A stretch of DNA of 64,000 nt from Dicyema japonicum (GCA_011109175.1 RDEW01000002.1:198299-262298); one strand, 5' to 3'. Shown: positions 20,609 to 64,000, counted from the first letter of the stretch. The notes: a model not told the origin generated them from the letters alone. Numbers and translations are program-made.

Positions 20609-20670
20609 ATTATGGTAGTCTCGACAATTATTCAATTATTTAAACAAAGATTTACGAATTGAATAATTAA

Positions 20671-20940
20671 TTTATTAACCTCAGATACACGAAAAGAAGT
20701 TAAAAGTAAACAACTAATTAAGTGTATCCGATTTCTACTGTTACAAAGACAGAGTCATTCAATTCCACCCGTAACCATCATAAAAAGTAAAAGACGTCGA
20801 TCACTTGCAGTTTTGGAAACCCCTCCAGTGGAGTGGAGTAAAGAAAATGATTTCTTTTCAGGCCAACCTGGCACTGGGCACCACCTGAGATAAGTCGATC
20901 ACAAGATACCACTCAAACTTGAACCAATTAGCTACAAGAC
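20671..20940 (-). mobile_element. Dispersed ~300 bp repeat (SINE-like family 2)
   Basis: Homologous to 48350-48636 and 52921-53225 (shared TTTATTAACC..GATA, CCAGTGGAGT, AACCAATTAGC). Confidence 0.65.
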
Positions 20941-21026
20941 ATAGTAGTTTATTAAATTAAGAAAATCATCATAAAATAAATGTTTAAAGAATGTGCGTAC
21001 AGTAGTGAAATTCAGCAAAATATAAT

Positions 21027-21109
21027 GCGTTGGTGGCCGAGTGGTTAAGGCGGCAGCCTAGAAAGCTGTTGGGATTCGTCCCGCGCAGGTTCGAATCCTG
21101 CCCAACGCG
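21027..21109 (+). tRNA. tRNA-Ser (anticodon AGA)
   Basis: GCGTTGG/CCAACGC acceptor stem, D arm TGGCCGAGTGGTTAAGGC, anticodon arm GCAGC-CTAGAAA-GCTGT, variable arm GGGATTCGTCCC, T loop GGTTCGAATCC. Confidence 0.95.
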
Positions 21110-21114
21110 TTTTT
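21110..21114 (+). terminator. RNA polymerase III T-tract terminator
   Basis: TTTTT immediately after the tRNA discriminator base. Confidence 0.75.
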
Positions 21115-27633: not shown

Positions 27634-28149
27634 AAGCTTGGTTAAATTTCGCTACTAATTTTCCTGATTTGGGGTTATATTAATAAAAAAATTTCATATT
27701 ACTTTTAAAATGATAAAATCTCACCAAAATCGAGGTTTTCTCACAGTTTGGGATTTTCCAAAACGATCTCGGACTTTTTATTTAATTGGTTGTGTAATTT
27801 TATCTCTCCCTTACGCAATCTTTCAATAAATTTATAAAAATTAAAAAAAATAATAATTAAAAATCATAATTAGTAAATTATAAAATTATAAATCTGTAAA
27901 TTTTAATTTAAAATAATCACGTTTGAAATGTTTGTTTCTTGTTGTATGCATGGACAATCGAATGGTTTTGAAAATTCCATACAAAAACAACTTTCAAAGT
28001 ACAGTACGTTTTTTGATTTAACGAAAAAAATTTTCGTTATTTAAATTTATTAGAGATAAAATAAATTAATGAGGCTTTTTATTAAAAAAATAATTTATAA
28101 TTATTTTATTTTTTTTTGTATTTTTTTTTAAAACAATTAAACAAATAAA

Positions 28150-29029
28150 CAGGTGTTTAGTGGATACGGTCCTTCACTCTACTTCCGGACTAAACGTACC
28201 GCTGACGCCGTCGGGAGCCTGGGATGAATGGATGAATTTGTACCTAAATGCTCCGGTCAATTGTGATAAGCAAAAGTCCTATTTGTTTTGTGTCTTCGAA
28301 AAGAAGAAAGAATCCCTTGAAAAGACGGAAGATATAAGAAGGCTTGCTTGCCTCAAGACAGCCAGTTGTCACTCGACGGGGGCCTGGATGAACGCTTTTC
28401 CATCTGCTGAAATTGGAAACCTGTTGGATGATGAGGCTGTGAGAATAGCTACCTCGCTTCGTCTTGGTCTTAAATTGTGTGCCGAAAGAAAATGCCGCTG
28501 TGGACGTTGGATCGATCCTTTTGGTTATCATCCCTTGTCATGCAAGATGAGTGCGGGTCGTTTCCCCAGGCACTCCTGCCTTAACATGACATTAAAGAAT
28601 TCCCTTGCCTCTGCTGGACACCATTGCCTGTTAGAACCTGCTGGTCTTTCTCGAAACGATGGAAAACGCCCTGATGGGATGACGACTTTTCCATTCGCCA
28701 ACGGACGAAACCTGATCTGGGACGCGACGTGTGTTGATACTTATTCCCCGTCTAATTTGGTTGCTTCTGCTTCAGACCCAGGACATGCTTCGAAGCAGGC
28801 CGAGGAACGAAAGAGGAGGAAGTACCAGAGAATTTCGGAGGAGTATATATTTGTTCCATTCGCGGTGGAAACGTCAGGAATCCTTGGCCCCCAAGCAGAT
28901 GAGTTGGTTCGTAAGATCGGCTCCATGATTCAAGCTGTGACCAAGGATCCGCGAGAAACTGGTTGGTTCCGAGAACGTATCTCGTTGGCTATTGTTAGGG
29001 GAAATAGCATGGCCATTCAGATGCCTTAA
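28150..29029 (+). mobile_element. CRE-type non-LTR retrotransposon, 3' part with open ORF
   Basis: TGAWMNAFPS, LRLGL, C-x-C-x-HPLSC, RH..LN, EPAGLSRNDGKRPDGMT, WDATCVDT, FAVETSG, ISLAIVRGN. Confidence 0.9.
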
Positions 29030-29099
29030 TTTAATTTTTATTCATTTGATTTTTAAATTAATTTTTAAAAAAATAAATAAAAATTTAATTAAACAAATA

Positions 29100-29660
29100 T
29101 CAGTTGAGGAAGCCTGCTGCGTGGATTGCGAACGAGTTCCCTCGGAGTATGGCTATTCCAATCTTTTGTCTTAGTCATAACCCTTCTCGTTGATCCCTTT
29201 TCTTTTTGGCAAGCAATCCTCCGAGTTCTTGCAAGAATTCAGCCGTCATTGGACCAAAGGCTCCCGATGATTCGGTCGCAACAGGAGTAAATCGGTAGCG
29301 ATCCCCGAGGCAAGAATATTTCTTGATTTTTAGGTTTTCCGCGGTCGAAGCAGCTGCTCCAGGTGTCTGAACAGATTTAAAAATGTTCGTGCTTGAGAAC
29401 GTGTCTATGCAAGTTGCGTCCCAGACCAAAGATCTTCCAGACGTGAAGGGGAAAAGGGTCATCCCGTCAGGTCTCTTCCCATCTCCTCGATCAAGACCCA
29501 CTGGTTCAAGCTGTGCTGGGAAGCCTGAAGCCTTCAGAGCTCTGACGATCACATCATTCAGAGCGGCATGACGTGGTCCCCTTCCGGCGCTTCTTCTGCA
29601 GGACAGCGGGTCCAATCCTTTCACATCGACTGTTTTCCCGCATAAATTTATTAACAATAA
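29100..29660 (-). mobile_element. CRE-type retrotransposon 3' part, tail-to-tail with the previous copy
   Basis: LDPLSCRRSAGRGPRHAALN, EPVGLDRGDGKRPDGMT, WDATCIDT, PVATESSG. Confidence 0.9.
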
Positions 29661-30469
29661 AATATTATTTATTAACTATGGGGGAGAGCGGCTGCTGACA
29701 TCACGGAGTAAGCGTTTCCGTTATTAAAATTATTTTAAATTTTCGTTAAAAAAATCCACTGTACAATCAAATTAATTCATCTTCAGAATTTAGAAAATTT
29801 AGGAAACTAGTCTTATCAACCAACAAATAAGTGTACCAAGAATTATGTCAACTTGAAACTGAACACATTTTTCTCTTCAAGTGCATCCATATGCAGTACA
29901 TTGAACTGAAGAGTAAAAAATCTATGCAATCTCTCAAAAAATAATAATCAAACTCACTTTAGTTTAAAAAACTCCTTAAGATTTTCCTTAATTTTAAAAT
30001 ATTATCCTTTGTAGCAGAAACAGCCAATCTCTTCGAGTACTCTATATGCAATATTCACCATCTCTTCTGATGGACTTTGCGTGTTGCCCAGTTTCCGAGA
30101 ATTCCGTAAAATCTCACGATTGACTAAAACGAGGGAAAATCTCAATGTGGATTGTTGTAATTGTGCAGAACAGTATGGAAAGTATATTTCTGACTGAATT
30201 TAAGTTACGTAATGATGGAGAGCTGCCAAGGACATTACGTGCAACTAATCTTGTGTTTCTGTCCGCTTGTTCGAGAATCTATGTTCTTAGCTTGTCTATT
30301 ACTAAGAATATGAGGAAACTTTGTAAGAGAGGGAATATTTTTATAAAAATATTGAATAATGTGTTCGATCGTTTTATTGCTACAGAATATTGATAAATCA
30401 TGTACTTTATAACTCTATTTATTTTTGGGAGTGATTATAATTTTAATATAATAACTCCCCCACGGAGAG

Positions 30470-42340: not shown

Positions 42341-43659
42341 TGAAGTGGTAAAGAATATTTAATCTATTTATTAAAATAGAAACCTTTTAAATGAAAACCT
42401 CCCCAATATAACACTGTTGATTTCAAACTGAAAGCATTCAAATATTCAATTCAGGGGTAGTTATGCTTTAATTATTGAACTCTACCAGCATTTAAGGCAG
42501 AATTGTTACTCTTGAATGAAAATAATCAAAATAATAAAGATTTTTTGATTCAAAGTTTTATTTTGTTTTATATTAGTATTCAAAGGATATGAAATCGATG
42601 GATGGTAAAATTTTGAATGTAATCATGGGAGTTGTCTTCCTAGCAAGGACAAATTTTGGCATATTCTCAGAGTTAGAGATGATAAGGATACTCCCAATTC
42701 ACTGGATACAGCAAAATGTATTATTATTTAGCTGTTCTTCAAAGCATCAATGATCAGATTAATGATATTGATTTACTCACTTATGTTGATAGTATTCTGA
42801 CCAATTCATAATTTTATTACATTCATTTTGAATTTTATGGTTTATTTTCCAAATTTGTCCTCATAAAATCACAAATTTATCAGTCGAAAAACTAATGAAT
42901 CAGTAAAAAAATCGGATTATCATTTCACAATAAATATCCTAATCATAAATGTAGGACAAAAACCAGATGTTTCTGAGTCGAATCTTGATGCCGTCCATTC
43001 CGGTTGAAGGTTGGACATGATAGAGGAGAAGGAAGACCACACGGGATGAAGATCTTATTTGTAAAAGTACGCTCTCTCGTGATGATATAACTTTTGCTTT
43101 TATAAAAATATTCGTTAAAAAATCGAAAATACAAAAAAAAACGTAACAGTTTTTATTACCTAGAAAGGATGATTTGCGAGACCATCATTGTATGGAAAAG
43201 TACCAAAGTTATTGAGAAATTATAAGAAATTGTAGTCCCATTTAATAGTTAACATAGTTAATAAGCCAAAGAAGTGAACTGTTGCACATAAGAAAGTCTG
43301 ATGCACCAATGTCTAGATTCTAATTCCATTAGGCAAAAATTAAGGATCTTGGAGTTTTTCTTGAGGAGGATCAGAAATCGTTTGTATTAACCCTGTCGAC
43401 ATAATCGATTCGATGATGCCCTTGGTAATAATTATCAAGATTAACTGGTGGGCAACTATGTTTTTTGAACGTCATTAATTGTTTTGTGGTAACGTGTTTG
43501 TTGTGGTGTTTATACATTCTTTGAAACCTATCCCAAATATAAGAGCTGTTTATGGGGAAAGACCTGGCAACCTACCCTGTATTTAAATGCCAAAAAATCT
43601 TATGAGCAAACTCTCCTACGATCTAATTGGAAGCAACGTTACTGTAAACATCAAATCTC

Positions 43660-44045
43660 GAGTCTTCATCACACAAAATCTCACAAGTTCGCAACATGGA
43701 ACGTAAGAGGCTTAAGCGAAGGGAAACTAGAAGTCGCAAAAAAAGAAATGAGAAGGATTGATATTGACCTGCTTGGAGTAAGCGAACTTCACTGCATCGA
43801 CAGTGGTTTTTTTGCTCTGATGATTTCGTCATTCTGGTAACATTAATGCGAAGAGAAATGGAGTGGCCTTCATTGCTTCAAAGAAAATTGCACCTGCTAT
43901 TGAACGTCATAGAATATTTAATGATCGGATAATACTAATCCACGTTCGTGGATGACCAGTGAATATTAAGGTCAAGCAACTGTAATCCCCAACATTATTG
44001 CAAGGATGACGAAATTGACCAAATTTATTATGAATTTCAAATAAA
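43660..44045 (+). mobile_element. RTE-clade LINE 5' (APE endonuclease) remnant
   Basis: FATWNVRGL, IDLLGVSE, NGVAFI, NDRIILI. Confidence 0.8.
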
Positions 44046-44880: not shown

Positions 44881-45604
44881 CATTCACCGCGTTTTAATCT
44901 CGATATAGACCCCCATGATTTGAAAGCATAAACCTCTTGAAGAACATCGACAGGGCAGTGAACACGCTTATATAGAAAATCGTGTTCATATCTCTCGACT
45001 ACACTGGTTAGTATATAAAAATGATAAGACTGTGATATGGGAATCAATCGCTTAACAAGGAAATGATTTTAATATATTTTAATTAGATTCGTTAATTTTA
45101 TTTTAGGTAACAAATCGACATTGATTGAAATGTAATAATATTTCAATCTAAGAATTTAAACTAATTCGTAAAATCGTTAAAATAGGAATCATACACAAGC
45201 AAAAAAGAACGAGATTTAAAAATATTTTAATGCCTTGGATATTGTACTGGATTAATAAGCATACTGTTCTTATCTTTGAATAAAGTGCGAGTTCTGCCTA
45301 AGCTAAGATTACACTACTACTTATTAGCCGCAGGGAGATGTATTCAACCAGTAAAACTGTTGACTAATTATTATGAAATCCATGAGTTTCAAAGCAATTA
45401 ATTAAAAAACCAATCACCTTTAAAGTTAAAATGATTGAATAAGATAATGGAATAATTTCAAAAATAAAAATTTTCAGGAATTGAAAATTAAGGTAATAAA
45501 ATTTTTTATTAAGATATTTAACTATTATAGATTAAAAAATTCAAACTTTGATATAAATACAAGAAATAAAATTTAAAAGAATTAATTAAATTCCTAAACA
45601 GTAA

Positions 45605-46619: not shown

Positions 46620-47350
46620 TAATCAACACTACTCGAAGTCTACTTTTGTTTCGAGCTTAATTTTTCCAGAACAACTTTTGCTGGGAGACGATTGACGTAA
46701 TACGACATTATGCTGTCTACTATCTTAAGGCTATTAAAGGAGCGTAGCAATTCGGACGTTAAAAAACTTGTTGCAGAAGGACTCGGAACTATTTGTTATT
46801 TTATGTAAATAAAAAATATGGGGATGTCTGCAAGAACGAAAGATCTTGCAGGATGAATCTAGCTTTTAATATGGAAATATCTAGCTTGGGACTTGGCATG
46901 TGATGCTTTTTCTTCTTCAATTTAGAGCTAACACCTGAAATTCTCAAATAAATAAATAAAAAACCATTTGATAGTTAATCTTAAAGCATGTAATAATTTT
47001 AAATTCGCCGAGAACACAAATAAAAAGGGACAGCTGAGAATAAAGATGACTTATTGACTTATTCCATCATTCTCATAGACCCGAACAGCATGGGAGTAGT
47101 TTTTGCCGGATTTCCCAAGATCGCTCAAACAAGTTGAGGTGGAAAATTTTCAAAAATACGATCTCCTTGCAAAAGACCTATCGTTTTTTTATGACGACTA
47201 AGTAAAAATTATCCCATTGTATGACGCTGAAGGAATTGTTACAAAATGTTTCAAGAATTATATTGATAAGTTATCAGTAGAAGAGACAGTGAGGAAAAAC
47301 TCATTCATCTGTGCTTAAAAAATTCTTAAAAGTATAATCATCGAACAAGA
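46620..47350 (+). mobile_element. R2/R4-like remnant; uninterrupted paralog of the hAT target site
   Basis: VENFQKYDLLAKDL, VKIIP, GIVTKCFKNY. Aligns with 52740-52852 joined to 62506-63130. Confidence 0.8.
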
Positions 47351-48129
47351 ATATGATTAAAATTCCGACGCTAATTACTCGTTTTCGATATCATAGATCC
47401 AATGATCTTAGAAAAAAGTCGGTCTTGAGCCGAGGAATTATCTATTCTCTACAACAAAGAGCTGTACATAGATCTAGAAAAAATTTTCATATTTTGTTTT
47501 TTTGGAATTCTCGAATGTTTGAGCACCGTCCACAGCTTTCAATTGAGAGTTTAAATGTGTTGACTTGGAAAATGTGTCTAAAAGTCCCATTTAATAGTTA
47601 ATACAGTTAATAAGCAAAAAAGTGAACTGTTGTATGTAAGAAAGTCTGATGTACCAATGTCTAGATTCGAACTCCATCTGGCAAAAATTAAGGATCTTGG
47701 ATATGCTTTTTTTGAAGAAGATCAGAAATCGTGTTTATTATGTATGCCTGTCGACTTAATCGATTCGATGGTATCCTTCATGATAATTATCGAGATCAAC
47801 TGGTGAGAACCAGGTTTGTGAACGTATTTTTTGATTATAGACAGACGTCTTAAGCTTTTTTTAAAGGAAAAACTAACTTTCTATTTAAGACTCCAGTTGT
47901 CTCGAGAGAGATTGCACGTAGATAAACCGATTAGTAAACCTTTAGTTCCCTTTTTCTTAATGCATATGAAAATGCATAGAAAATAACGGAATTATTCAAA
48001 AATTGACAAGTGACGCCGACATTAGTGGTTTATCATTGTTGAACTGGATTCTTTTTCGGACTCATAACAACCGATAAGAAAAGAATAAAAGTTAGGAACA
48101 TTTTCAATGTCTTTGATTAATAACCATGA

Positions 48130-48310: not shown

Positions 48311-48349
48311 TCTGTAGGCAATAATGAAATCACGTCATTAATTCATTAA

Positions 48350-48636
48350 TTTATTAACCCCGGATAAACCGAGAAGGAAGTAAAATTAAACAATTTATTC
48401 CAGTACACTTCTACAGAACATAGTCCATCCGGAATCAGCAAAAAAGTAAAGAAGTCATTACTTGTAGTTTGGATACACTTCCAGTGGAATGGGAGAGAGC
48501 AAATGATCTTTGTTTGTGCCAGCTTGACACTGAGAGGACTTCGACAAGGAATATGACATGACGTCACTCTAATAGTAAGAGAAAGAGGAAAAGACAAAAA
48601 ACAGAAAACTTCAACAAATTAGCCACGTGGCACCAT
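48350..48636 (-). mobile_element. SINE-like family 2 copy
   Basis: Homologous to 20671-20940 and 52921-53225. Confidence 0.65.
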
Positions 48637-49689
48637 TTAAACGTGGCAATACTATCACTGTCATAACAACTATGACAAATTCAAGTCAATAAAACAAACA
48701 TAATTCACTTACTGAAATCAATGTAAAATTATTAAAATTAGAATAATTGCTAGTCTAAAATTGTAGATTAATCAAAATTTACGAAAATATTATATATTGT
48801 GCCGAACACTGCCAGCAACAGTAGCAAACAGACGGAACCCACATTCTTTATCAAACAATTATTCTGCCACTGGATATGGAACAATGACTGAAAAACGATT
48901 ACTGGACTAGTTTTATAAAATAAAAACGGCAACCAATTGCAATAAATTACAATCCAACTTTATTAACCAACATAAATTTATTCTTTTATTTAACACTTCC
49001 ATCCATCCAAAGTGGACCCACCGACATTACCGACATTGCGGTGCTCTCACGATTGCAACAGAGATCGACTGGAGAAGCCACCCGTTTCACGAGCTTTGAG
49101 GCTTTTTAGTGTAGCTAAGCGTCCAATTTTCATTAGGAAGCGAAGCGATTTTACTTATTCCTCCAGTTGTCTCGACCACAATCGGATAAACACGAATTGG
49201 TAGCGTAGTGCTACGTATTTCTTTTTATGCCTTCATCGTTTTTTCCGCAGCATACAGTGTGTCTACCGCGCTGCCGACAATGTTGAAAGGGTAAAGCGTG
49301 TCGCCAAAAGTAGAGTCCCTGACCAAAGGTTTCTCTTTTTCAAATGAAAAAAATTGTGATCCCGTCGAGACGTTTTCCGTCTTCTCTGTCTAGGCAATTA
49401 CAATTAAATATCATTCAATAAAAGTTCGATAAATAATAAAGCAGTAAATAATAATGGTGACCGGCTCTAAATGAAATTAGGCTGAGAACTAGGCGCAAAA
49501 TCGATTTAATCGTTAAAGCCTTTGAACTAATATCATGTAGACAACAATTCAATCGAGGCTGTATATCAACAAACCAAAACACGAGGCAAGCACGAACAGC
49601 CTTTCAATGGACGTCGTACGGAAAGCTATTCAAAACCAGAAATCGTCTTACGCAAGTGGTCCAGATCGAATTTCCTCCATTTTACTTAA

Positions 49690-50099: not shown

Positions 50100-50668
50100 A
50101 GACCAATGTCGGACACCAATGTTTTGTGGAGGTCGATGCCAAAGGGCTACATCCGCTCTCATGCAAAAGGAGTGCGGGCAGAGCACCCCGCCATGCTGCA
50201 ATAAACAAAATTGGCATGCGTGCTCTTGAAGCTGCATGCTTCCCGGCATTAATGGAGCCCGTGAAATTGGACCGCGGAGACGGGATAAAATTGGATAGGT
50301 TAACTATCTTTCCGTAAACTGAGAGAAAATCGCTCGTATGGGACTGCACTCTTGTGGATTTTTTCTCGAACTAGATGACACTCAGATCGGCGCAGTCTGC
50401 TGGATCGGCAGCCGATCCGGCCGATAAAATCAAGAATAAAAAATATTACGAAATTGGGGACCGCTACCGTTTTGTACCGGTGGCAATCGAGACGTATGGA
50501 GCGGCCAAAAGTATAACAGCCTCTTTCCTGAAAAAATTCGGGGGGAGGTTGGCCCACTGCATGAAAGACGTTCGGGAAGCGGTCTGGCAGAAGCAACGGA
50601 TTGGGATCGCAGTTGTCCGCAGTAACGCTTACTCAGTAATGTCAGCAGCCGCTCTCTCCCATAGTTAA
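50100..50668 (+). mobile_element. CRE-type retrotransposon 3' part
   Basis: GLHPLSCKRSAGRAPRHAAIN, EPVKLDRGDG, WDCT, PVAIETYG, IGIAVVRSN. Confidence 0.85.
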
Positions 50669-50743
50669 TTAATAATATTTTATTGTTAATTAATTTATTT
50701 AATAATTATCGATTAAAAAATTAAAACTTTGATATAAATACAG

Positions 50744-50950
50744 GGATCGCTACCGATTTACTCCTGTTGCGTCCGAATCATCGGGAGCCGTTGGTCCAAT
50801 GACGGCTGAATTCTTGCAAGAACTCGGAGGATTGCTTGCCAGAAAGAAAAGGGATCAACGAGAAGGGTTATGGCTAAGACAAAAGATCGGAATAGCCATA
50901 CTCCGAGGGAACTCGTTCGCAATCCACGCAGCAGGCTTCCTCAACTGACA
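50744..50950 (+). mobile_element. Young 5'-truncated CRE copy upstream of LAMP-like copy 3
   Basis: Only about 5 substitutions against the reverse complement of ~29095-29305; absent from the paralogous positions of copies 1 and 2. Confidence 0.9.
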
Positions 50951-51039
50951 TTTGTTTAATTGTTAAAAAAAATTTTTGTTAATAAAAAAAATACAAGAAA
51001 ATAAAATTTAAAAAAATTAATTAGATACATATACAAAAA

Positions 51040-51979
51040 ATGGATCACTTAACTGGTTTCCCAATTATTGCATATCCTAGCTATCTTTATTTATTTAATG
51101 ATCTTTAACACTCAAAGTGAAGAAATTATTACGAAAACAGTACAATTGGATGACAATGGTGTTCCTATGTGGGTCGAGTTAAACAATGGTTATGTTACCT
51201 CTATAATCAGTGGATTAATCACTTTAAATTATTCATATAATAGAAAAGTAGAGAAAGGATTAATTTTAGATTATACATTTCTTAATTGATGAAGCAAATT
51301 TGTATGTTACTGAAAATCGAGGACACTTTGCATCATTTTTGTCTAAAAAAGATGTCAATATAAGCTTTCATTATAAACACACTCGAGATGAAGTTCAGAT
51401 ATATCAGTTTAAATGCTCAATATTTGCCGGGAGTAAATAATTGAGTTTAATTTAGATTTTACCATATTCCTAGGAAAGTCGATTAAAATATCTCATAAAA
51501 TTGGGGATTATTGTAAATGTAATGAGTTAATAATTTCCGAACACAATAGCTCATTAAAAATATTGAATTTGAGACTTCAATTTTTAAAAAATGACACAAT
51601 CAAGAATTTTACTGGTGAAAGTTTAATTCGTATTAAAAATAATAGCTACTGATTGCAATTGTAAGAGTGGTTTTTCAACTATGTCTAAATTTATTAGACA
51701 CTTAAAAAGACTGATCTTGTAATGAAGAAACATCATAAAACTAAAAATATTATACATTCATTCCATTCTCAAATTAAAAGAAATAAGATTTCCAAAAAAA
51801 ATATTGCAATCCCAACTATAATTCTAAAAGTCAATAATACAAAAACTGGATCTACCAGCAATGATTATAAACCATTAATTTATGGTCTTGTTATTTTTGG
51901 AGTTGTAACAATTTCAGTGATAATTTATGTCAAAGTTAAATATGCTGCTAAAAAACAAGATTTCTACTCAATCCCTTAG
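51040..51979 (+). CDS. LAMP-like type I membrane glycoprotein, copy 3 (tail KQDFYSIP*)
   Basis: Same exon structure; tandem duplication of AGATTTCTACTCAATCCC(C)TTA at the stop. Confidence 0.7.
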
Positions 51980-52920
51980 ATTTCTACTCAATCCCCTTAA
52001 TATAATTACAATATTCTGTTTTTTGGATTTAATTTGTTTTTTGGGTTTATCATCTAATTCTAGACATAAACTTATTTTTATAAACAATGTAGGTTAAAAT
52101 AATTAAATTGTACCTAAATGGAACTCTTTAGTTTTTCACTATTACTCAGATATAATAGATCATTAATAGACTTACTAGAAAGTCTCACCGCATAATCAAA
52201 ATCACTTTTTAAAGGATTTGGTACGCTCAGTTACTTGACTTAAATGTGATTTGGTGAAATACCTAAGAGATTATGTTTATTGATTCATGAAAATTGTTAG
52301 GTTTCTTAGTTTCTTATATCATCAGATACACAATTTTTTATTAAAAAATCTGTTCATATTTATAACTAGTTACTCGGATTGACATCCTTTAATTGTATCG
52401 GCTTGTATCGATCTCGACAGTTATATACTATACTTACTAGATGGATTTCGAACTCAACCGCTAATTTCCGAATAGCTTAGAAACTACCTCACTGTGATCA
52501 GATTTGAATAATAATACTGCACTCTACGAAGAGCCATATTAGCTATAGCTGCCCTCAAGATGTTCACTGATACCGGCGTCACTCGTCATGTTCACTGATA
52601 CCATCAATACTTTCGAAATAATAAAAAATGAAATTAGATCACTGAATAAATTCTTGATTCGCATCCGCGACGACAAATTAGAACAGTTTGCTGCCATGGT
52701 TCTCCCTTGACCGTTACTTGGGACACTTCTAGTCAATAAAACAATAATCGAAGTCTACACTTGTTTCAAGCTTCATGTTTGCTTGAACAACTTTTGCTGG
52801 GAGACGATTGACGTAATACGATATTTACCTTTCCTATCTTAAAGCTATAGATCAGCGATTCTCGATTGAGAGTGCGAGAAATAATTTTAAAATTATGATT
52901 ACTTGTACATTTATGCAAAT

Positions 52921-53225
52921 TTATTTATTAACCCGGATACACTGAGAAATAAGTTAAAATAAACAACTAATTAAGTGTATCCAGTTTCCACTTCTACGGA
53001 AACAGAGTTCATCCAGAATCAACATAGAAGGTTAAAGACGTCCATATTTGAAGTTGTGGAAACCCCTTAGTGGAGTAGAGAAGAGCAAATGATCCTTTTC
53101 GTGCCGGCCTGGAACTGGGCGCCAACCTTGACAGGTGGATCTTATGATGCCACTCTAGTAGGAAGAAAGAGGAAGAACAGACGAACATAACTGAAACTTC
53201 AACCAATTAGCGACGAAGCACCATA
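52921..53225 (-). mobile_element. SINE-like family 2 copy nested in the hAT left arm
   Basis: Homologous to 48350-48636. Confidence 0.65.
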
Positions 53226-53409
53226 TTGCGCCACGCGGCTATTTCCCGTTGGTGTATATGCAAAAGATCATCAAATAAAATATATATCAAGGGAAATTAA
53301 ATACATTTATATTTTCTTATAATTTATTATTAAATGTTAGAAAAATTTGGCTTGATAAAAAAAATAAAACTCGTGGTTATCTATGTCAACGTGTGTTAAA
53401 TTTCGAAAA

Positions 53410-55170
53410 TAAAAAGAAGACTATGTTGAATATGGCTTTATGAAGATAATTATTGATGGAATCGATTGACCTCAGTGCATGTTTTGTGATGCAATTTTAT
53501 CGAATTCAAATTTGAACAATCGAAGCTGAACGTACATTTTAAATCTATCCACGGAGGTGCAAAACGTTCAGGAAATGATTATGAATCTTTGAGTGCTAAA
53601 AGGGCACGATACGATATCCAAGGAACTCTTCCGAAGCCTGGGTTTACACACCATTGACAAACCGTTACTTTTGGCGTCATTCAAAATTGCATATGAAGCT
53701 GCGAAATCAAAGAAGACACATACTATTGCGGAGACTCTTATTAAGCCGTGTGCATTGGAAATTGTGAAAGCAGTTCTGGGTCCAGACGCCTTTCGAAAAC
53801 TGCAGCAGATTCCTTAATTTAATAGTTATATCCGGGATCGAATTAATTGTATCAGCGATGATACTCTTAAACAAGTTGTTTAGAACATAAGAATTCTTGC
53901 ATCAAGATTTCAATCTAGTTGGATGAATCTACCGATGTTGATAATTGCAGTCAACTAATTTGCTTCGTTCGTTATGTACAAGAAAATTTAATTGACGAAG
54001 AGTTTCTTTTTTGTAAACCTCTCGAAACAGAAACCTCTGCAAAAAATGTTTTTTCAAATAATCGAGACTTTTTAATGAATACGATATTCCATTGGAAATT
54101 ATCGGGTTAATTTGTACAGACGGTGCTCCAGTTATGCTGGGGAACAGGTCGGAGTTTGCAGCCTTTTAAGAAAACATGTTCCAGATGCAACAGTCAATCA
54201 CTGTATTCTTCATCGACATGCACTCTTATCTAAGTCTCAGCCAATGAAGTTAAAAGATGTCTTTAATTCGTGTTAAATCGTAAATTTATTCGAGGAAAGG
54301 CTTTGAATCATGATTTTCAAAGATGGCTTTCAAGAGGCCGTGTTTTAACAAGATTTTTGACGCCACTATTTTCTTGTATCATACTGATGTTAGATGGCTT
54401 TCAAGAGGCCGTGTTTTAACAAGATTTTTTATTCTCAGACGTGAAATCGAATAATTTTTATTTGAAAAAAAACTCTGAACTATTTGATTGTTTCAAATCT
54501 TCATATTTTGTGGTATTTTTGGCTTACATATTCAATCATCTTAACCAGTTGGATCTTTCAATTCAAGGGAAATGGAGGAGCATTATAAATGCTTCTGACA
54601 ATCTACGTGCCATCAAGAATAAACTGTTATTGTGGACTCGACGAATTCAAGACAATAATTTTGGAATTTTCCAACGCTGGATAAAATTGCTATTGAATTC
54701 AACTCGACTTTAGATAAAAATATTAAAAAAGAAATCAGCATTCATCTTGAATGTTTAAAACTTTCATTTGATGGGTTCTCAATCGGAAATATTAAAAATT
54801 CTGATACCTGGATTGTTAACCCATTTGCTTTCAAAATAGAAAAAATGGAATAGAAAAGAGATTAAAGACAATTTGATTGAAATGCAATCATCTACATCAA
54901 TGAGAATGTTGTACGACTCAAATTCTTTGGAGGTTTTTTGGTGCGGTTTGCAAATTGGTTTGCGACCCTTGCGAAAAAGCACTGGAAGTTCTGGATCTAT
55001 ATGCAACAACTTGGCTATGTGAATCTGGATTTTCATCTCTACTATATATAAGAAATAAGTACCGAAACGCTCTAATCCCTGAAAACGATCTGTGAATTAC
55101 ATTAGCTAACAAAAAACCACGCTTCGAAGAATTAATTAAAACTAAAAGACAGGAAAAGTCTCAAGGAACC
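53410..55170 (+). pseudogene. hAT Buster/ZBED5/SCAND3-type transposase, decayed
   Basis: HTIAETLIKPCA, DESTDVDNCSQLICFVRYV, FLFCKPL, CTDGAPVMLG, HCILHRHAL, TDVRWLSRGRVL, ATTWLCESGFS. Internal ~37-bp duplication (54321/54394). Confidence 0.9.
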
Positions 55171-55264
55171 TGACTAATTTTTTGAATAAAATTCGAATTC
55201 TCTTAGATTTAAAATTGAACTATTTGTTATTTTATGTAAATAAAAATATACACTGTATTCCGCG

Positions 55265-55500
55265 GAAAAAACGATGAGGGCAAAGGAGAAGAAATACGAA
55301 GCGCTACGCGACCGATTCGCGTTTTATCCGATAGTGGTCGAGACAACTGGAGGAATAAGTGGAAAATCGCTTCGCTTCCAAAAGAAACTTGGACGCTAAG
55401 CTACAATAAAAAGCCACGACGCACGTGAGACCCGGTGGCTACTCCAGTTGATTTCTGTTGCAATCGTGAGAGGCAACGCAACGTCGATATTGTCGGCGGG
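55265..55500 (+). mobile_element. CRE-type 3' remnant
   Basis: KEKKY, FYPIVVETTGG, ISVAIVRGNA. Confidence 0.75.
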
Positions 55501-55699
55501 GTCCAGTTTGGATGATGGCAGTTTTAATATGATTTACTGATTATTTAAATATGATTACTGTAAATTGGTTAATAATATTTTCCCAACCTTTAAAAAATTA
55601 AACTATGTAAATTAATAAATTTTATTTTAAAAAAAGGAAACAAAAATTAATTAAATTTTAATAAAGTTATACTCAATTCCCAATTGCCTCTCATTAGAA

Positions 55700-56500
55700 T
55701 TTTTAATATTTTCTTTATATTTCTTATTGAAGTAATGAATTCTGCATCATTGTCATTTTCAATATTTTCTAGAAGATAATTTTCAATCTCTCTAAATTTT
55801 AAAAGCATTTCAGCCTTGTTTAATGATTCATGTGCCTCTTGTTCTTTTCTTGAAACATTGAAGCATCTTTGTTTCCCGATAAATGATCGCTCAACTTATG
55901 TGTCCCTGACATATTGGCGCAAAGCATTACTGAAAATCTATCCTTGAAATTTTTATATCCGCCGAAAGTGATAGAAATTCTCCGATAATAATAAATTTAT
56001 AAAAATTACTCTCTCATCCAAATTATAAATATTTTCAGACAATTTACTCTGAAACTTTTTCAAAATTCTTTTAAAAAGCCATCAATATCCACATGTTTTT
56101 CAAGTCGCATTTCGAAGTGTAGTTCATTCATTTTTTTAAATTTCTCCAAAAACCCTGCCCTATGTAATATAGAGAATCGTTCAATAAAGTACCTTAATGT
56201 TTGAATAAATAATGTACCTTTTGATTCTATTGAATCCATCCAATCAGATTTTCATAAATATCCGGGTATTTTAATTTTTTACAAGTTTTTAGTTAGGATT
56301 TCTGTTCTTGAACTGAAATAAAAGCAATTCTGCGTTCATTAACATACATTGACTGTCCTTCTTGAGATTCACTTTTTAAAAGTAGAAGTAAATCTGTTGC
56401 ATGTCGTCTGACATGAAGCTGATTTATTGGTTTCTTTATACCGCAAAATATCCACTTTTTGAGCAATTGAATGTTTAGTGTAGCCTCCAACAAAAACATG
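55700..56500 (-). mobile_element. pogo/Tigger (CENP-B-like) transposase remnant
   Basis: YPDIYENLIGW, NIYNLDE, GYKNFKDRFSVMLCANMSGTHKL. Confidence 0.7.
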
Positions 56501-57369
56501 CTTGCTTTAAATTATTTAAATTTTTAATAAATATTTAAAAAATAAAAATAACTTTTAAAAATGTTGGCAAATTTCAGAATTGGCAAATATCGTTGAAAAA
56601 AGAAAAAATCGATAAAAATTTAAGAGTGGCATATTTGAAAGAGTTGAGGAAACTCTCTACGATCGAGGAGGTTGGAAGAAGTTAGTTCGGAGAATTGTTT
56701 TGAATGCTGCACGAGTGAAATTGTAACTATTATGATTTTACGAATGTTGCTTATAATAATAATATTTGAAACAGTTTACTGTATAAGGTAACTCATTGCT
56801 CACTTTCGATATCATTGATTCAATCGATCTTATAAAGATACTACATTACTGAAAATCACTTTCAGCCTAAAATTTTTAATAAACTACAACTATGGAGAGT
56901 ACTTTATCAATGTTCCAATCGTTCTTAGTTAGTTAGCTCAAACCTCACAAGTTTGTAGGAGGACAGCTGTATTCAATCCAGATGTTATCCGCATAAGAAT
57001 TCTGGTTACTGGTCATTTAAAAAGTTATTACACATTTGGAACGTAAAAGAAATTTGAAAGAAAAATAACACCTCGCTCTTATTACCAATACTGACACACA
57101 CCTGTGGTACCTGGGGACTTCAAAACAAGAAACCCACAGTTTAAACAACTACCACAGGCTTATCCATACAGGATCCCAAGGTCGGCGCCTTTTACTGCTA
57201 TCTCCTATCCTTCAAAGCTAATCACCAGGGCAATCGATGTTTATACTCAAGATTCATTCTCTTCTTTGCATTTCTTTGTCCACGAAAAGAAGTAAACCTC
57301 AAATAAATCATCAGGAGAATTGCCTCTAAATACGAAACTGTTAATTAGGTGAGTGCACTGGGAAGTCTT

Positions 57370-58720
57370 TCAATCGCTGACTATTCACCTTCATCATCCA
57401 GGATCAAGAAACACATGTAGGATCTACGCAAACAAATAATAAGGTCATGATCGGGGACAATACACATGCACACTGACCTTTGGATAACACATCATCGAAT
57501 CCAAGATAGAGTCCCATCCTACTCAATGTCTTCGGCATCGATTGTGCAGCATCAGCTGAACTTATGGTACGTGAGTGATGCGACCATCAGTGGGAATTGG
57601 GAAATTGTAGTGGCATTGGTCGAGTCCGCCATCTATGCCATTGCCTCGCTTGCGTTGGAACTGAATCCGTATAAATGTGAAATCATTAACGTTGCTTTCG
57701 GAAAGGACGACTTTAACCGTGAGTAGCTACAATTTCTAATTATTTCAGTCACCAAATTTTTTTTGACTCTCCTCAATATGGCAGTAATATGTCAATTCTT
57801 CTGGTAGAGAAAAATGCATCCGTTCAACTATTCACATCCAACTTAAAACTCCTAGATCTTCACACGTCCTTATTATTCCTCAGACTCCTTTTTCTTCTGG
57901 TCAATACTCAATGTCTTCACGCTCATTCCCGTCGGAGGAGTGCTGGGAGGAGTTTAAGACACAATGCAATCAACGGCGTTATTGCTTGGGGACTTGAGTC
58001 GGTAAGATTTCTGTTTAATTGGATCCACTTGGACTCGCCCAGCTAACCAAAGCACATGAAATCTAGTGAATTTTTTGATTTTAGAGTTCTTGGATGCTCG
58101 CAATGCTTCCTCAGCTTTCAATGCGGAATCTGATAATTTTGTGTGCGAAAAGGTGACTGTGCATGACCCATGGCGAATCAGACAATCATTGAAAGAAAAA
58201 AAACTGTGATCATTCTGATTTAAACAAAATAAATCCTTTATTACCAAAATGGTAAAACATGCTAAATTAATATTTACTGCATTTTTGGTGGAATTGTTTT
58301 AATATAAATCACTCCGACTAAAGTTACAAAAACTCATACCGTTTCCAATAGAACGGAAATTCAATTATCGCTAAGAAATTGTAAATTCAGCATATATGTA
58401 ATCGGTACCTTGACCGGGACGCCACCTGTCTGGATAGCCTATCTCCCTCAAACCTTGTGATAATAATAACTAACCCAGACTCTACTTCCGAGTAAGATGA
58501 GACCCTAAAGATGAAGAAATAAGTATGTCTTGGTGGACAGTTCATTTTTGAACCAGTCGCAGAGGAAACGTCAGGAATCATATGAAGCATGTCATTAATC
58601 CTGAAAACAGAATCGGATCGCTCATCGAGAAGAAAATAATAGGAGACAAAGAGCTGGCCAATTGAGCTTATTTCCTTACAATCGTCCGGGTAAATAAGTT
58701 CACATTTATGAGAGCAGGCA
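57370..58720 (+). mobile_element. Several decayed CRE-type segments (RT and REL)
   Basis: LNLWYVSDATI, LELNPYKCEI, HAHSRRRSAGRSLRHNAIN, FEPVAEETSG, LTIVRVN. Confidence 0.7.
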
Positions 58721-59271
58721 GTAGTTGTTAACTGTTAGTTTTTGCATTAAACATTCTGATTTCAAAAATAGATATGATAAATTCAAGATATAAACCGAAA
58801 TATCGATCGTTACAATTCATATAGAATGTAACTTTTTGCTTATTTTCGATATCATTGACATAAACGATTTTAAAAAAGAGATTGTCTGGGGTGAAGATTT
58901 CACTCGTCTCGGCGACAACGTGCTGTACGTAAAATATGATGAGAGGTGTTGTATTTAGTTATTTAGAGTTCTCAAATGCTCGCGATGCCTCACCATATAT
59001 TAACAAAGATTAATTTTGACTACAAAAAGGTATTGTCGATGCCCCAGGTCGAATCAGACATTTAAACAGAAAAAAAGAATAAGTATTATCTTGTCTGAGC
59101 GTTTTATATCACCACGATATCAGAATTAAACTTGAAAATGCAGAAGACTGTGACTATTAAGAGAGAAAACAACAAAAGGGCTTTTTGAAAAATGATAATT
59201 AACGAAATTATCATGAACGTCCTTGGGAGTACTTAAAATAAAAAAATAAAATTAACAAGAAATTAAAGTCT

Positions 59272-60444
59272 TTAAAGAAGAGGAATATATTTCATCCGTC
59301 TTATCCAATTTCGGCGTTTTATCTTAACAAATGTGATCACTCCTATGATTGAAGGTGTTACAACGGTGAGTATAATTCCTATAATAATATACATTTTTGA
59401 ATGATTATAATTTTTATTTTTTCCAGGAATTCCTTTTTCAAAACACCCGACTCTAAAATTCAAAAAAATTAAACCGTTCCCAATATAACGGAATTTCAAA
59501 TCATCCCTAAGAATTTGTGCCTTAAATAATGAAAATTCAGCATATATGTCATCAGTAAATTTAGCAATAAGCAAGTCGGAGGTGCATGAATTCCTAACAT
59601 CAACCAATTTGGATTTATTAGGTCTCCAAGACAGAGTATACACGCTATCGATGATTAACTGAATGTTGGAGATATAATATTTGTTCTCATAAAATATAAA
59701 TGTAAAAATATTCTAAATGTATCCTATAAAAGACAACGCCACACTATTGTTTCCAAAATTTATCGTAGTCTTTATATTTTCGTCTGAAAATAAATTCATT
59801 AATCAACTATATAAATATACAATTTACGTTTTTATGAATGTGATCATTAAAAATATGATTTTAAAATTCCCACTTAATATAGCTTTTAGTCTATTTTCGG
59901 CAATAAAATATCAATATCGAACATTTGGATCGTTAGATGGATTACAGTCATTAGCTAAATTAAACAAGATTCAAACCCTTTCCAATTAAATTTGTACGTA
60001 TATCTTTATCGAACAATTCTGCCGTCATAGAATAAATTGTGAGAGAATAATGATTCTCAAAATTTACGGAGATATACCCGCATCAGTAATATTCTCCATA
60101 TTTAATATTTGGAAGATTTATTGTATTCGTATAGGTTTCATCCCTTTGTGTGTTAAATAATAATTACTAGAATTTAATTCTATGTATATTGAGAGGTTGT
60201 AGAATTCCTTGATAATACACCAAAAAAATTAAAAATTAAGTTTGTTATTTGGAATTTATTTCATTCCATCATAAAAATTCCAGATTCCATAATGAATGTT
60301 AAATAAATAATTCTTTGTCTACCATTATAATTATTTATAAAATACATTTTTACGAGTACTCGTCAATAAACAATTTCCATATAATGACATATGAGGTCTG
60401 AATTTGATATTCGTGATTGAGGACAAAATCATTAACAATAACAT
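59272..60444 (-). CDS. Putative two-domain LAMP-like membrane protein (possibly degraded)
   Basis: Signal-like MLLLMILSS; domain 1 KYGEYY*CGYISV..IGK|ANDCN with the same phase-1 intron as the family; domain 2 SC..FKAQILR..IGN; TM MYIIIGIILTVVTPSIIGVITFV; tail KYIPLL. 5' end is approximate. Confidence 0.5.
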
Positions 60445-60929
60445 AAAAATGTATAATGAACACTTCGATGTGTATAATTTAGGTCACTTGTTATATTGAT
60501 GAATTTATTTTTAAATTATAATAGTTTCGAAACTATTAAAACTTATATTAATTTTATAATTGTAATAATCTTATTTCATTAATTCATTAATCAAGAAAGT
60601 TACTTCACACTGCACATGTAAAGCGTCATTTATTTTAAGCCACGTGCTACCATGTGATGCTATTTGCTATTTGGTTAAAAATTTATCTTCCTTCACTTTG
60701 ATAACTTATTTGATCCTACTTACTAAAAAGACGCCGCCATTCACAAAGATCTTACTATTCTTTTCCGAGGAGACAATTTCGTTACCTCGAGACGACTTTT
60801 AGAATCGCTGGAACACGTCAGGATCAATTATCTAGTTTGGGTTAACCCTCGCTTATCGAAAAATTGTTATTTTTATTTATTTAAGAATTCATTAGTTTTT
60901 CATCATCAAAAATTTCATATTAGGTCTTC

Positions 60930-62180
60930 GTTAAGGTGCTGATTCTTGGCCGAACATGATATTTCCGACCCCGTTCGGTTCTGTCATCCGGATAAATTCA
61001 CTCATCCCTCCTTTTCTGGACAAATCGAACCCTTTTTGTTACGCCTATCAGAGAGTCGGAAAGGTAGACGAATTCCTCTGAGGACACCAAAGGCCGCTCG
61101 AATTCCCACTGCAGAATACCTCACGTCTTTAATTTATAAAGCTATCAGTACCAGCGACCAGATTTCTTGGATACGTCTACTGAGCTTTGCACCTATGACC
61201 CTAGGAATTTCTGGCTCAGAGAAAGCTCGCAACTGATCATTGGCCTCAAAATTTAAGAAGAATATTTCTTCAATTTTGGCAACTTCAACGCAGCAAGACT
61301 CTGGAATCGAGCCTGATCAAGTACTTCGGCGTAAAGTTGTCCACAGAAGCTGAGTGTATACAAAAAGATTCTAAAACATTTAAAGAGAGTGAACCGAAAA
61401 CTGATGGAAAACGGCGTTCGTGCAGCTGTTAGAGTAATGTCTTGTGACGAATCACTATTGAAGTCTTGGAGTTACTGAGAAGGAAGCTCCCTACTCAACC
61501 AACAAACTAGCGGAACTTGACAATGCCAGAAGACCGCCCTGCATTTATTTCCACGGAATTTGAAGTAGTGCGTGGAATAAAGTCTTTTGCTCCCAGTAGC
61601 TGCGGAGGTCTGGACAAACTGCGCTCAACCCATTAAAAGGACTTAACATCCGGAACTACTGCTAAAGCCGGCCGTCCTTGTTAACGTCTATCACCTAGAT
61701 GTTCACTCGATTTGTTAATGGTGATATTTCAAAATTTGCTAGAGATCTTCTTTTTTGTGGACATCTATTGGCATTCAGAAAAGGAGATGGTGTCCGCCCA
61801 AATGAGATCAGTACATACTTTTAAGACTTGCTACTAAAATCGCCGCCCGGAGAGTCTCCTACAATAGTGCTGAAGAGCTGTGGGGTGGGAGTGATCGGTG
61901 GTTGCGAGGCAGCAGTCCACGCCGTGAGGAGTTACTTCAACAACAATAATTCTTTGACCCAATGGCTCGGCCTGAAGCTTGATATATCAAATGCCTTCAA
62001 CTCGCTGAGGAGAAACTTTATTTTGGAAACCTGTTGGAAGTGAGCTCCAGAGATTGGCTGACTAGTACACCTATCGTATGGGACGGACTCAGCATTAGTT
62101 TATGAAAACGACATCGTTTATTCACTCATAAGAGTTCAGCAGGGAAACCCTCTAGGGCCAACTTTTCATCCCTTGCGAGC
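60930..62180 (+). mobile_element. CRE-type retrotransposon 5'/RT part, truncated at the hAT tail
   Basis: KSFAPSSCGGLDKLR, GVGVIGGCEAAVHAVR, LKLDISNAFNSLRR, VQQGNPLGP. Confidence 0.85.
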
Positions 62181-62269
62181 TGAAGTCGAGTTGTCCAAGA
62201 AGTCCTTATTTACGCAACTGGACATACCTCGACTCTGAGTTTGATAAAGTTATCATCTACTTTATACAA

Positions 62270-62434
62270 AAAATAAGTACCGAAACGCTCTAATCCCCGA
62301 AAACGATCTCTGAATTGCATTAGCTAACAAAAAACCACGCTTCGAAGAAATAATTAAAACTAAAAGACAGGAAAAGTCTCAAGGAACCTGACTAATTTTT
62401 TGAATAAAATTCGAATTCTCTTAGATTTAAAATT
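62270..62434 (+). repeat. Second copy of the hAT transposase 3' tail
   Basis: Near-identical to 55053-55216 (AAATAAGTACCGAAACGC...TTAGATTTAAAATT). Confidence 0.95.
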
Positions 62435-62497
62435 TGGAGGTGCGAGGTTGGTTTTGAAACTTGGGGGTGCAAACTCAAAACAAATCGAGAAGCTCTG

Positions 62498-63130
62498 CTA
62501 TAGATGGAGAGTACCAGATCGGACGATAAATAACTTATTGATGAATGATTCGGAACTTTTAGATATTTTATGAAACTAAAAACTCTGGACATATCTTCAA
62601 GAACCAAAGATTTTGCTGGATGACTTCTTGTAAAATATGAAAACATCTTGCATGGGACGTGGTATGTGATGCTTCTCCTACTTCAATTTAGCACTAACAC
62701 CTGAAATTCTCAAATAAATAAACGAGAAACTATTTGAAAGGCAGTTAATCTTAAAGAATGTGATAATTTGACATTCGTTGAGAACACGAAGAAAAACGGA
62801 CAACTGAGTATAAAGATGGCTGATTGGCTTATTCCATAATCATGAACGCAGCTTTCTATTGATTCGAACAGCATAGGAAGAGTTTTTCTGGATTTCCCAA
62901 GATCGTCTCAAACAGTTGAAGAGGAAAAGTTTTACAAATACGATCTCTCTTTGCAAAAGACCACTCGTTTTTTATGACGCCCAAGTAAAAATTATCCCTA
63001 TGGAATGACGCTTTAAGGAATTGTTAAAAATTATTTCGAAAATTATATCGATAAGTTGTCGGTAGAAGAGAGAGTGAAGGCAAAAACCCTTTCATCTGTG
63101 CTTAAAAGTATGATCACCGAACAAGACATA
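62498..63130 (+). mobile_element. R2/R4-like remnant, right half of the copy split by the hAT (left half ~52560-52852)
   Basis: SQDRLKQLKRKSF, KIIP and GIVK motifs; collinear with 46740-47350. Confidence 0.75.
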
Positions 63131-64000
63131 TGATTAAAATCCCGAAGGATGAATACATCTTTTCTAACAATCTTGTGTAGCTGACATGTGATTATTGAGA
63201 CACTACATGTGGGTAGAGGAGTAATTATTATGTAAGAAAAAAAATCAAAATGATCAAACTGTAATAATTGAATGTCTGCTTCTGCTTACATCTGTAAGAG
63301 AAATCTTTTGAACAGATACTCGGTTTCCCGAAAATCGTATCTCGTTTTCGATATCATAGACCCAATGACCTTAGAAAAAAGACTCCCTTGGACCGAAGAC
63401 TATGCTCACCTCGACGACAACGGGATGTACATAGAATCTGGTAAAGAGACTATCATATTTTCATATTCTCGAATATTTGAGTAGCCTCCCCAGTTTTCAA
63501 TTTCAGAGTTTAAAGTTTTGACAGAGAAAAGGTGTCTGTATTTAATAAAGCTCGTAACAGTTTTTTATATACCTAATTCTGGCACTTGAAAATAGTAAAG
63601 ACGATTTAAATAATATTTTACCACTTTGGAAGCTTCTCAGTGATAACTTTGTTATATCTTCACTTCTTGAACATTACGTGTCCTTATAATAATTAGACAT
63701 CAGATCTACAAATTGGTTAGAATCCTTTGATATTCAGCTCAATTCAAGTTCAGCGTTCGATCATTACATAAAATATAGTCAACGAATATAATTAAAAATA
63801 TTTTCTATTGATGTCGTTCCTTGTATAGTAATAGTGCGACTAATTTCACATATCACAGTTTTTACCATTTTTATATGAATTTTTGAAAGATTAACGTCCC
63901 TTCATTTACATCTTTTATTGATCTCCCTGGGTAATCTCGCTGTCAAATCGAAAATAAATATCTTTACCTTTCATAATACCACGTGACACAATGGACGTCT

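Follow-up and report, generated by a model that had tools for sequence, protein, structure and literature searches.

A Buster-type hAT insertion in a LAMP-like gene cluster of Dicyema japonicum, its tail possibly split later by cluster-type filler DNA

Introduction

In a 64,000-bp stretch of the Dicyema japonicum genome (GCA_011109175.1, RDEW01000002.1:198299-262298; hereafter the window, with positions counted from its first base), two matching ends of a hAT transposon enclose 9,645 bp (52853-62497) and are bounded by a perfect 8-bp duplication of the target site (TSD). The locus raises the question of whether everything between these ends, including pieces of a LAMP-like gene family, arrived as one gene-carrying transposon, or whether a plain element inserted and was altered afterwards. 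An earlier note on this DNA had set out two answers, namely a composite hAT that captured a gene and could explain how the LAMP-like family dispersed, and a tandem duplication plus deletions after one insertion. That an insertion took place is proven by ends that match, by the perfect TSD and by the empty-site paralog; that everything between the ends came with it is not. Here we report that a ~2.43-kb Buster-type hAT inserted once into this cluster, and tentatively propose that its tail was later broken and filled with ~7 kb of cluster-type DNA.

Results

A single hAT insertion downstream of a LAMP-like gene

The left edge of the segment reads ...CCTATCTTAAAG CTATAGAT CAGCGATTCTCGATT... (TSD and terminal inverted repeat (TIR), 52845-52867), and the right edge reads ...AATCGAGAAGCTCTG CTATAGAT, followed by GGAGAG... 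(62483-62505). The two TIRs agree at 13 of 15 positions and are the sole zero-mismatch matches to the degenerate pattern CAGNGNTTCTCGATT across the 64-kb window; the ends and the TSD are as the earlier note had described them. The 8-bp TSD and the short TIRs with a (C/T)A(G/A) start are those of the hAT superfamily, and the central TA of CTATAGAT conforms to the Buster consensus nnnTAnnn, reportedly given by Arensburger and colleagues in 2011.

The target is a locally repeated unit, of which self-comparison finds three copies in the window (U1, U2 and U3; Table 1), and the hAT lies in U3. After the segment plus one TSD copy is taken out, the rebuilt empty site aligns to U2 at 46.6-47.0 kb with 82.5% identity, and a 137-bp ungapped block spans the junction; the gap-free match near ~46723, which had been proposed on a pair of 39-mers (31/39), is borne out over this longer block. 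In the self-comparison, 46625-46734 is 84% identical to 52740-52848, and 46730-47320 is 80% identical to 62497-63107. The homologous position in U2 lies ~176 bp past the stop codon of the U2 LAMP-like gene. Because the TIRs, the TSD and the ungapped empty-site alignment agree, we conclude that the hAT inserted once, shortly downstream of the U3 LAMP-like gene, and made the duplication CTATAGAT in doing so.

A related miniature inverted-repeat transposable element (MITE) of 247 bp occurs at 16035-16281, with TIRs of the same motif (CAGTGGTTCTCAA...) and a perfect 8-bp TSD, CTTTAGAA, which also has the central TA. The TSDs of the MITE and of the 9.6-kb segment have CTnTAGAn in common, which hints at a target preference of the family. 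Internally deleted relatives of the hAT are also found in the public contigs; the public DNA data are those of one 2019 sample, with contigs of 150-280 bp that were aligned to 54000-59999, where all parts are multicopy. Therefore, the MITE with its perfect TSD and the internally deleted relatives point to past mobility of the hAT family in this genome.

The transposase is a decayed pseudogene, probably of Buster type

The earlier note had placed a Buster transposase within the segment; its remains are present, but as a heavily broken pseudogene (~53380-55160, plus strand) with many stops and frameshifts. Legible remnants include ...DESTDVDNCSQLICFVRYV..., ...IGLICTDGAPVM..., ...HCILHRHAL... 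and ...WLCESGFSSLLYIRNKYRNALIPENDL..., a candidate motif of the hAT C-terminal dimerisation domain, ...WLCESGFSSLLYIRNKYRNAL..., is read by eye only, and the stop-free pieces have no Pfam match. The piece at 53919-54107 resembles FAM200/ZBED5 RNase-like (DUF4371) clusters (0.95, 202 shared features), and all ten of its ten best named matches are FAM200/ZBED5, these being language-model look-alikes only. FAM200 and ZBED5 are Buster-derived proteins.

Other observations concern the same body. A further copy of the unclassified ~300-bp repeat in its 5′ part (Table 1) sits just upstream of a tRNA-Ser(AGA) gene (21026-21110). Between 54000 and 55216, every public contig differs from the window letter at no fewer than 12 hAT positions, for example at 55092 (G>C) and at 55099 (A>G), where tail copy 2 (see below) carries the family letter. 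Such differences are either private changes of this old element or rare variants that the contigs have lost.

The 3′ tail of the hAT is present twice around intervening DNA

The last ~40 transposase codons and the 3′ non-coding sequence are present as direct repeats of 183 bp with 8 mismatches (95.6% identity); the duplicated tail of the earlier note is real, with a length of 183 bp in place of 165. Tail copy 1 carries on the transposase frame and ends 63 bp before the element end, with no right TIR after it, while tail copy 2 reads directly into these last 63 bp and the right TIR. With the 7,035 bp of intervening DNA taken out, the element length is 2,427 bp, and neither the window self-comparison nor tblastx finds a further hAT piece between the two tails. 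Therefore, the continuous reading, the length of 2,427 bp and the lack of other hAT sequence inside together indicate one element's worth of hAT, of which 183 bp is doubled around filler DNA.

The two inner joints differ in kind. The joint of tail copy 1 with the filler (55216/55217) is blunt, and at the joint of the filler with tail copy 2 (62251/62252) about nine bases (TTaTCATCT) are near-identical to the stretch of hAT sequence immediately to the left of tail copy 2, a likeness that may be microhomology at the joint.

The filler is a mosaic of cluster-type pieces

The first bases of the filler are a 34-bp patch of unit right flank. As the earlier note had observed, they match the right flank of U2, namely 46786-46820, exactly at 30 of 30 positions and at 34 of 35 when one indel is admitted; at the 80% identity typical between units, a 30/30 match has P ~0.001. 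The matching stretch in U2 begins 48 bp beyond the homologous insertion point, and the patch matches the element's own flank (62553-62582) at 25 of 30 positions only.

Behind the patch stands a CRE-like retroelement piece with 85% identity to 48990-49260 (inverted) and tblastx matches at 28784-29017 and 50408-50653. In 36 contigs, other CRE-like copies extend left past 55250 in the family's own sequence, as is also seen at 49261-49300, and the copy at 55251 is therefore 5′-truncated. The summed contig depth over this piece is ~1000 times that of locus-specific contigs. The pogo and CRE pieces named in the earlier note are located (Table 1), their labels being less firm: the pogo and reverse transcriptase (RT) labels come from weak Pfam matches and motifs read by eye, and the name CRE-like, which stands for non-LTR elements with a C-terminal restriction-like endonuclease behind the RT, rests on motifs, the endonuclease open reading frames (ORFs) of these elements having no Pfam match. 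By tblastx the interior CRE-like pieces match the long ORFs of the window at 28.1-29.7 kb.

Two diverged plus-strand copies of a module of ~250 bp, here called module D, make up three stretches of the filler, with z scores computed against shuffles (Table 1). In the window, the module is confined to the right flanks of U2 and U3 and to the filler. The filler copies are 64-84% alike to either unit and equally distant from U2 and U3, whereas the patch matches U2 at 34 of 35 positions; the filler is therefore of multiple origins, which favours a patchwork. At the right edge, tail copy 2 starts precisely at the point where the RT piece loses its 3′ side, a kind of truncation that retrotransposition does not produce.

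Where the earlier note had seen a multi-exon LAMP-like gene inside the segment, we find one or two minus-strand fragments. Fragment 1 ends ...LIGKG, a 22-bp intron and ANDCNPSNDPNVRY (ANDCNPS), and then a stop; its nucleotide matches are 59941-60018 to 24856-24775 (68%, E 7.5e-5) and 60119-60157 to 51142-51104 (77%, E 5.5e-4). Fragment 2 reads ...FSLFKAQILRDDLKFRYIGN, a 22/24-bp intron (after ...IGN) and VGCFEKG..., followed by a membrane span and ...KYIPLL. The motif and the micro-intron position of both fragments are those of the units, ...LNLRLQFLKNDTIKNFTGN, intron, ANDCNCES. The best micro-intron-aware frame of the enclosed copies has 166 codons, as against 267 for the U1 gene (24.2-25.2 kb) and 133-164 for an opposite-strand null, and the enclosed copies are therefore fragments and not an intact multi-exon gene. 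It is by the distribution of module D and by the conserved micro-intron position of these fragments that the filler is likened to cluster DNA.

Unique stretches of the interior (for example, 55470-55663, 57673-57840 and 58112-58295) recur near letter-perfect in independent contigs. Other copies of interior parts stop or join differently at 55250, 55514, 56245, 56763, 57639>58349, 58706, 59685 and 59849; since these copies have other neighbours, the interior consists of independent repeats and not of one amplified unit.

Table 1. Features of the hAT segment, its filler and the surrounding units (window coordinates)
Feature	Position	Strand	Basis or likeness
Left TSD copy CTATAGAT	52845-52852	.	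sequence reading
Left TIR CAGCGATTCTCGATT	52853-52867	+	zero-mismatch match to CAGNGNTTCTCGATT; 13/15 vs right end
Decayed Buster-type hAT body, element positions 1-2364 of 2427 bp	52853-55216	+	three-frame reading
Unclassified ~300-bp repeat in hAT 5′ part	52918-53224	+	72-77% to 20665-20914 and 48345-48636
71-bp tandem duplication within transposase pseudogene	54302-54432	+	sequence comparison
Tail copy 1, last ~40 transposase codons and 3′ non-coding	55035-55216	+	95.6% to tail copy 2
34-bp patch of unit right flank	55217-55250	+	30/30 exact to 46786-46820; 34/35 with one A-run indel
5′-truncated CRE-like (restriction-enzyme-like (REL) endonuclease) retroelement	55251-~55650	+	C-terminal coding 55251-55514, then AT-rich 3′ region
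Pogo/Tigger-like transposase fragments	55650-56511	-	DDE_1 E 0.0098, 15.9 bits vs cut-off 22; motifs by eye
Module D copy 1, first part	56754-56836	+	like 63295-63377, 47371-47414; z 6.9-7.8
REL-endonuclease N-terminal piece, CRE-like	57858-58010	+	tblastx to 29520-29672, 50123-50242
Module D copy 1, second part	58070-58203	+	like 47491-47579, 63457-63539; z 6.2-6.3
REL-endonuclease C-terminal piece	58403-58582	+	tblastx to 28706-28885, 29262-29435
Module D copy 2	58836-59077	+	like 47375-47622, 63345-63533; z 16.7-18.7
LAMP-like fragment 2, C-terminal part	59272-59802	-	membrane span, tail ...KYIPLL; 22/24-bp micro-intron
LAMP-like fragment 1	59915-60160	-	exon-1-like and exon-3/4-like stretches, ~340 bp missing between
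Non-LTR RT pieces	60943-62251	+	RVT_1 E 0.066; motifs LDISNAFNSL, QQGNPLGP by eye
Tail copy 2	62252-62434	+	95.6% to tail copy 1
Final 63 bp of hAT including right TIR	62435-62497	+	sequence reading
Right TIR, as reverse complement CAGAGCTTCTCGATT	62483-62497		last bases of the final 63 bp of the hAT
Right TSD copy CTATAGAT	62498-62505	.	sequence reading
Unit U1	23484-25743	gene +	
Unit U2	44858-47579	gene +	
Unit U3 (hAT target)	50682-52852 plus 62506-63537	gene +	
Empty-site paralog (unit U2)	46625-47320	+	homologous 8-mer CTATTAAA at 46731-46738

The surrounding LAMP-like units and neighbouring repeats

The DNA has a GC content of ~35%. The unit genes are small, lie on the plus strand and have GT-AG introns of 22-35 bp; their products have a hydrophobic start, a Cys-containing outer domain, a single membrane span and a tail ...YSIPL... 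(YSIPLIEI). The family motif is ...L.L..Q.L..D......GN, a micro-intron and A.DC..., and the units read ...FTGN, 25-26 bp and ANDCNCES. One membrane span and a short Y-x-x-hydrophobic tail, as in the C-terminal part of LAMP proteins, are present (...IIIGIILTVVTPSIIGVITFVKIKRRNWIRRMKYIPLL). The resemblance of the pieces to the LAMP C-terminal motif is, together with this tail motif, the basis of the label LAMP-like. The Pfam search of 18 interior and unit pieces gives no match at all, hence none to the LAMP luminal-domain profile, a profile of the LAMP-like family has no match in PDB, and the LAMP-like pieces have 0 matches in an exhaustive search of 1.84 billion representative proteins and none in the ESM Atlas. 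No public RNA run contains the stretch. The three well-kept units (23.5, 44.9 and 51 kb) have gene and flanks in common and carry no hAT ends; therefore, the LAMP-like family did not spread as cargo of such a hAT in this window.

Other repeats were noticed beside these units. A nested 5′-truncated CRE-like copy of 246 bp (50743-50988) lies in U3, with 97% identity to 29087-29305 (inverted); it is flanked on both sides by AATACA and absent from U2 at 45555-45561. Two CRE-like elements stand tail to tail at 28094-29026 (+) and 29178-29675 (-), whose C-terminal frames, of REL-endonuclease type, are open over 311 and 166 codons and have no match in Pfam. A 245-bp repeat (83%) occurs at 43234-43476, before an AP-endonuclease-like ORF (43493-43837), and at 47583-47828, directly after the right flank of U2, and probably represents the 5′ terminus of a further non-LTR family.

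Discussion

Based on these findings, we propose, as the reading that we favour though hold with reserve, that an old Buster-type hAT had its tail broken at a later time and filled with ~7 kb of cluster-type DNA. The 3′ subterminal region of the hAT would have been broken, or a replicating strand would have left the element, at element position 2364. The next step would have been the copying or joining in of ~7 kb of cluster-like DNA, beginning with the 34-base patch templated on the U2 flank 8.4 kb upstream. Synthesis or joining would have resumed at element position 2182, which would account for the doubled 183 bp, for the presence of only one right TIR and for an outer TSD left intact. As this would be one event of exit and re-entry, no separate 117-bp deletion is needed. 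The blunt joint and the joint with ~9 similar bases fit repair by end-joining or template switching, as far as the sequence of the joints tells. If so, repair produced the 9.6-kb "element" as a by-product, and it is neither a gene-capture vehicle nor a participant in the spread of the LAMP-like family.

Several points weigh against this proposal. The patch begins only 48 bp beyond the homologous insertion point, which for random filler would be a coincidence of ~1 in 100, and the model may lack some step guided by homology. A filler of 7 kb is very long for template-switch repair, and the source of the whole 7 kb is not present in the window. Two separate family members would be expected to differ just as much as the tails do (4.4%). 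Moreover, among the contigs listed none bridges 55216/55217 or 62251/62252, and the long-range structure is that of the assembly alone.

The proposal has to be weighed against tandem duplication, assembly error and movement as a unit. The tandem duplication plus deletions of the earlier note stands in two respects, namely that there was one insertion and that the interior is DNA of the same cluster type, but fails when taken literally: a strict tandem duplication predicts ~95% identity of the flanks, whereas the patch shows 83% (P = 0.009) and module D 67-72%, and no second copy of the 7 kb is found in the rest of the window (1-52.8 kb and 62.5-64 kb). In a relaxed form, which we consider unlikely, two hAT-bearing paralogous units lay in tandem and were trimmed by deletions. 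The hAT would have reached the same site of the second unit via unit duplication or gene conversion, a 117-bp deletion would have taken the end of the first copy with its TSD and 47 bp of flank, and a multi-kb deletion would have taken the gene of the second unit together with the first 2181 bp of its hAT. Such units would account for the unit right flank that follows tail copy 1 in register (+48), for the same-orientation module D, which is roughly collinear with the unit flank when the CRE-like and pogo-like pieces are ignored, and for the identical TSDs and the alignment of the rebuilt site to U2. However, the flanks after the tails are 83% (25/30) and 67-72% identical whereas the tails are 95.6% identical (P ~0.009), so that one has to postulate a gene conversion confined to the hAT, and the 34/35 match of the patch to U2, which is without hAT, requires an additional one; no plus-strand remnant of the second unit's gene is found, and at least four extra events are required. 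An artefact of assembly, which we place lower among the unlikely explanations, would mean that a plain hAT or its more distant halves had 7 kb misplaced between two tail versions during merging, scaffolding or gap-closing. The published D. japonicum assembly, from which the window would come, was merged from Platanus and Falcon and then passed through SSPACE, GapCloser and HaploMerger, for a genome with 48.9% repeats and 1.24% heterozygosity (PMC6736024), and such a hybrid, gap-closed assembly of a heterozygous, repeat-rich genome leaves room for the error, as do the roughly one thousand copies of the CRE-like piece at the joint and the many positions at which the window letters are absent from public contigs. 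Yet the tails differ at 8 of 183 positions and are thus not one sequence placed twice, the window contains no N, the unique interior stretches recur near letter-perfect in independent contigs, and both inner joints must still exist somewhere, so that the oddity remains.

Movement as a unit is in our view the least probable of these explanations. Here, a hAT and a fractured hAT 3′ end around ~7 kb would have lain in direct orientation at a donor site and moved together into U3 as a macrotransposon or composite insertion, with the transposase using the outer left and outer right ends and making the 8-bp TSD. The outer 5′ and 3′ termini are correctly oriented with the perfect 8-bp TSD outside them, the first copy lacks its inner right end, the family has been mobile in the genome (the MITE and the internally deleted contig copies), the 4.4% tail divergence is compatible with two separate copies, and composite insertions known for Ac have hAT termini, 8-bp TSDs and inner joints that are blunt or show microhomology (PMC4270019). 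However, the inner flank at the donor would have to be a same-orientation unit flank within ~50 bp of the position homologous to the target, for which we would allow a few per cent at best, and the 183-bp overlap of the element parts together with the in-register patch opposes an origin from two elements at a donor. No other cargo-bearing copy turned up, no genome-wide search having been made; other copies of the interior parts sit beside other neighbours, the cargo consists of gene fragments and not of a working gene, and the three good LAMP-like units are without hAT ends. The gene-capturing composite that the earlier note had offered for the dispersal of the family is accordingly left without support, as the units lack hAT ends and the enclosed copies are fragmentary; it is undercut further by the mosaic interior and by the bases after tail copy 1, which belong to the right flank of a unit, 48 bp beyond the position homologous to the insertion.

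Other origins of the interior were considered and rejected. Had U2 and U3 undergone unequal crossover in their right flanks, the interior would be made of 46.8-52.8 kb plus the hAT, which is not observed. A single retrotransposition with a TSD of 183 bp does not agree with the 3′-cut RT edge and with the introns retained in the LAMP-like fragments, and a single transposon with its own ends would have inverted repeats at the interior edges, where there are none.

The 183-bp tail repeat and the mosaic interior speak for break repair within an element that was already old, and the locus offers a dated, well-delimited example of reshuffling in the LAMP-like clusters, riddled with transposable elements, of an animal with tiny introns. 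If movement as a unit were true after all, the locus would give animals a rare natural case of hAT macrotransposition, a counterpart of maize Ac/fAc, and such a macrotransposon would be a possible route for reshuffling a fast-evolving cluster of surface-protein genes.

Comparison with known systems

The locus is a structure of a known kind and belongs to an already-known category. With the Buster hATs (TcBuster/AeBuster, and the domesticated ZBED5 and FAM200) it shares the 8-bp TSD with central TA, the short TIRs with a CAG start, a transposase piece resembling the FAM200/ZBED5 RNase-like domain and, without the filler, a size of ~2.4 kb; this copy, however, is dead, with stops, frame shifts and a 71-bp duplication, and 7 kb of foreign DNA interrupts its tail. 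Pack-MULEs and transduplication likewise place host gene fragments between transposon ends. However, the captured pieces of Pack-MULEs are usually short and replace the interior of the element, whereas here most of the transposase gene is kept, part of the element is duplicated and the cargo is mostly other transposons.

Ac/fAc macrotransposons in maize were reportedly described by Huang and Dooner in 2008. Like these and the Composite Insertions of maize, the present segment has hAT termini around kilobases of host DNA, an outer 8-bp TSD and inner joints that are blunt or have a few bases of homology (PMC4270019). In maize, however, two separate elements at a known donor were seen moving and the cargo is donor flank, whereas the present case is known from its sequence alone, its element parts overlap by 183 bp as if from one element, and its inner flank keeps register with the target that it now occupies. 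Filler of the type made by microhomology-mediated break-induced replication (MMBIR) or fork stalling and template switching (FoSTeS), and the aberrant gap repair after transposon excision, resemble the locus in the short break-site duplication around an insert, in the patchwork with a short first patch from a nearby paralog, and in the combination of blunt and microhomology joints. Unlike the usual repair filler, that of the present hAT is, at 7 kb, far longer, and the event behind it is read from the resulting DNA instead of being observed.

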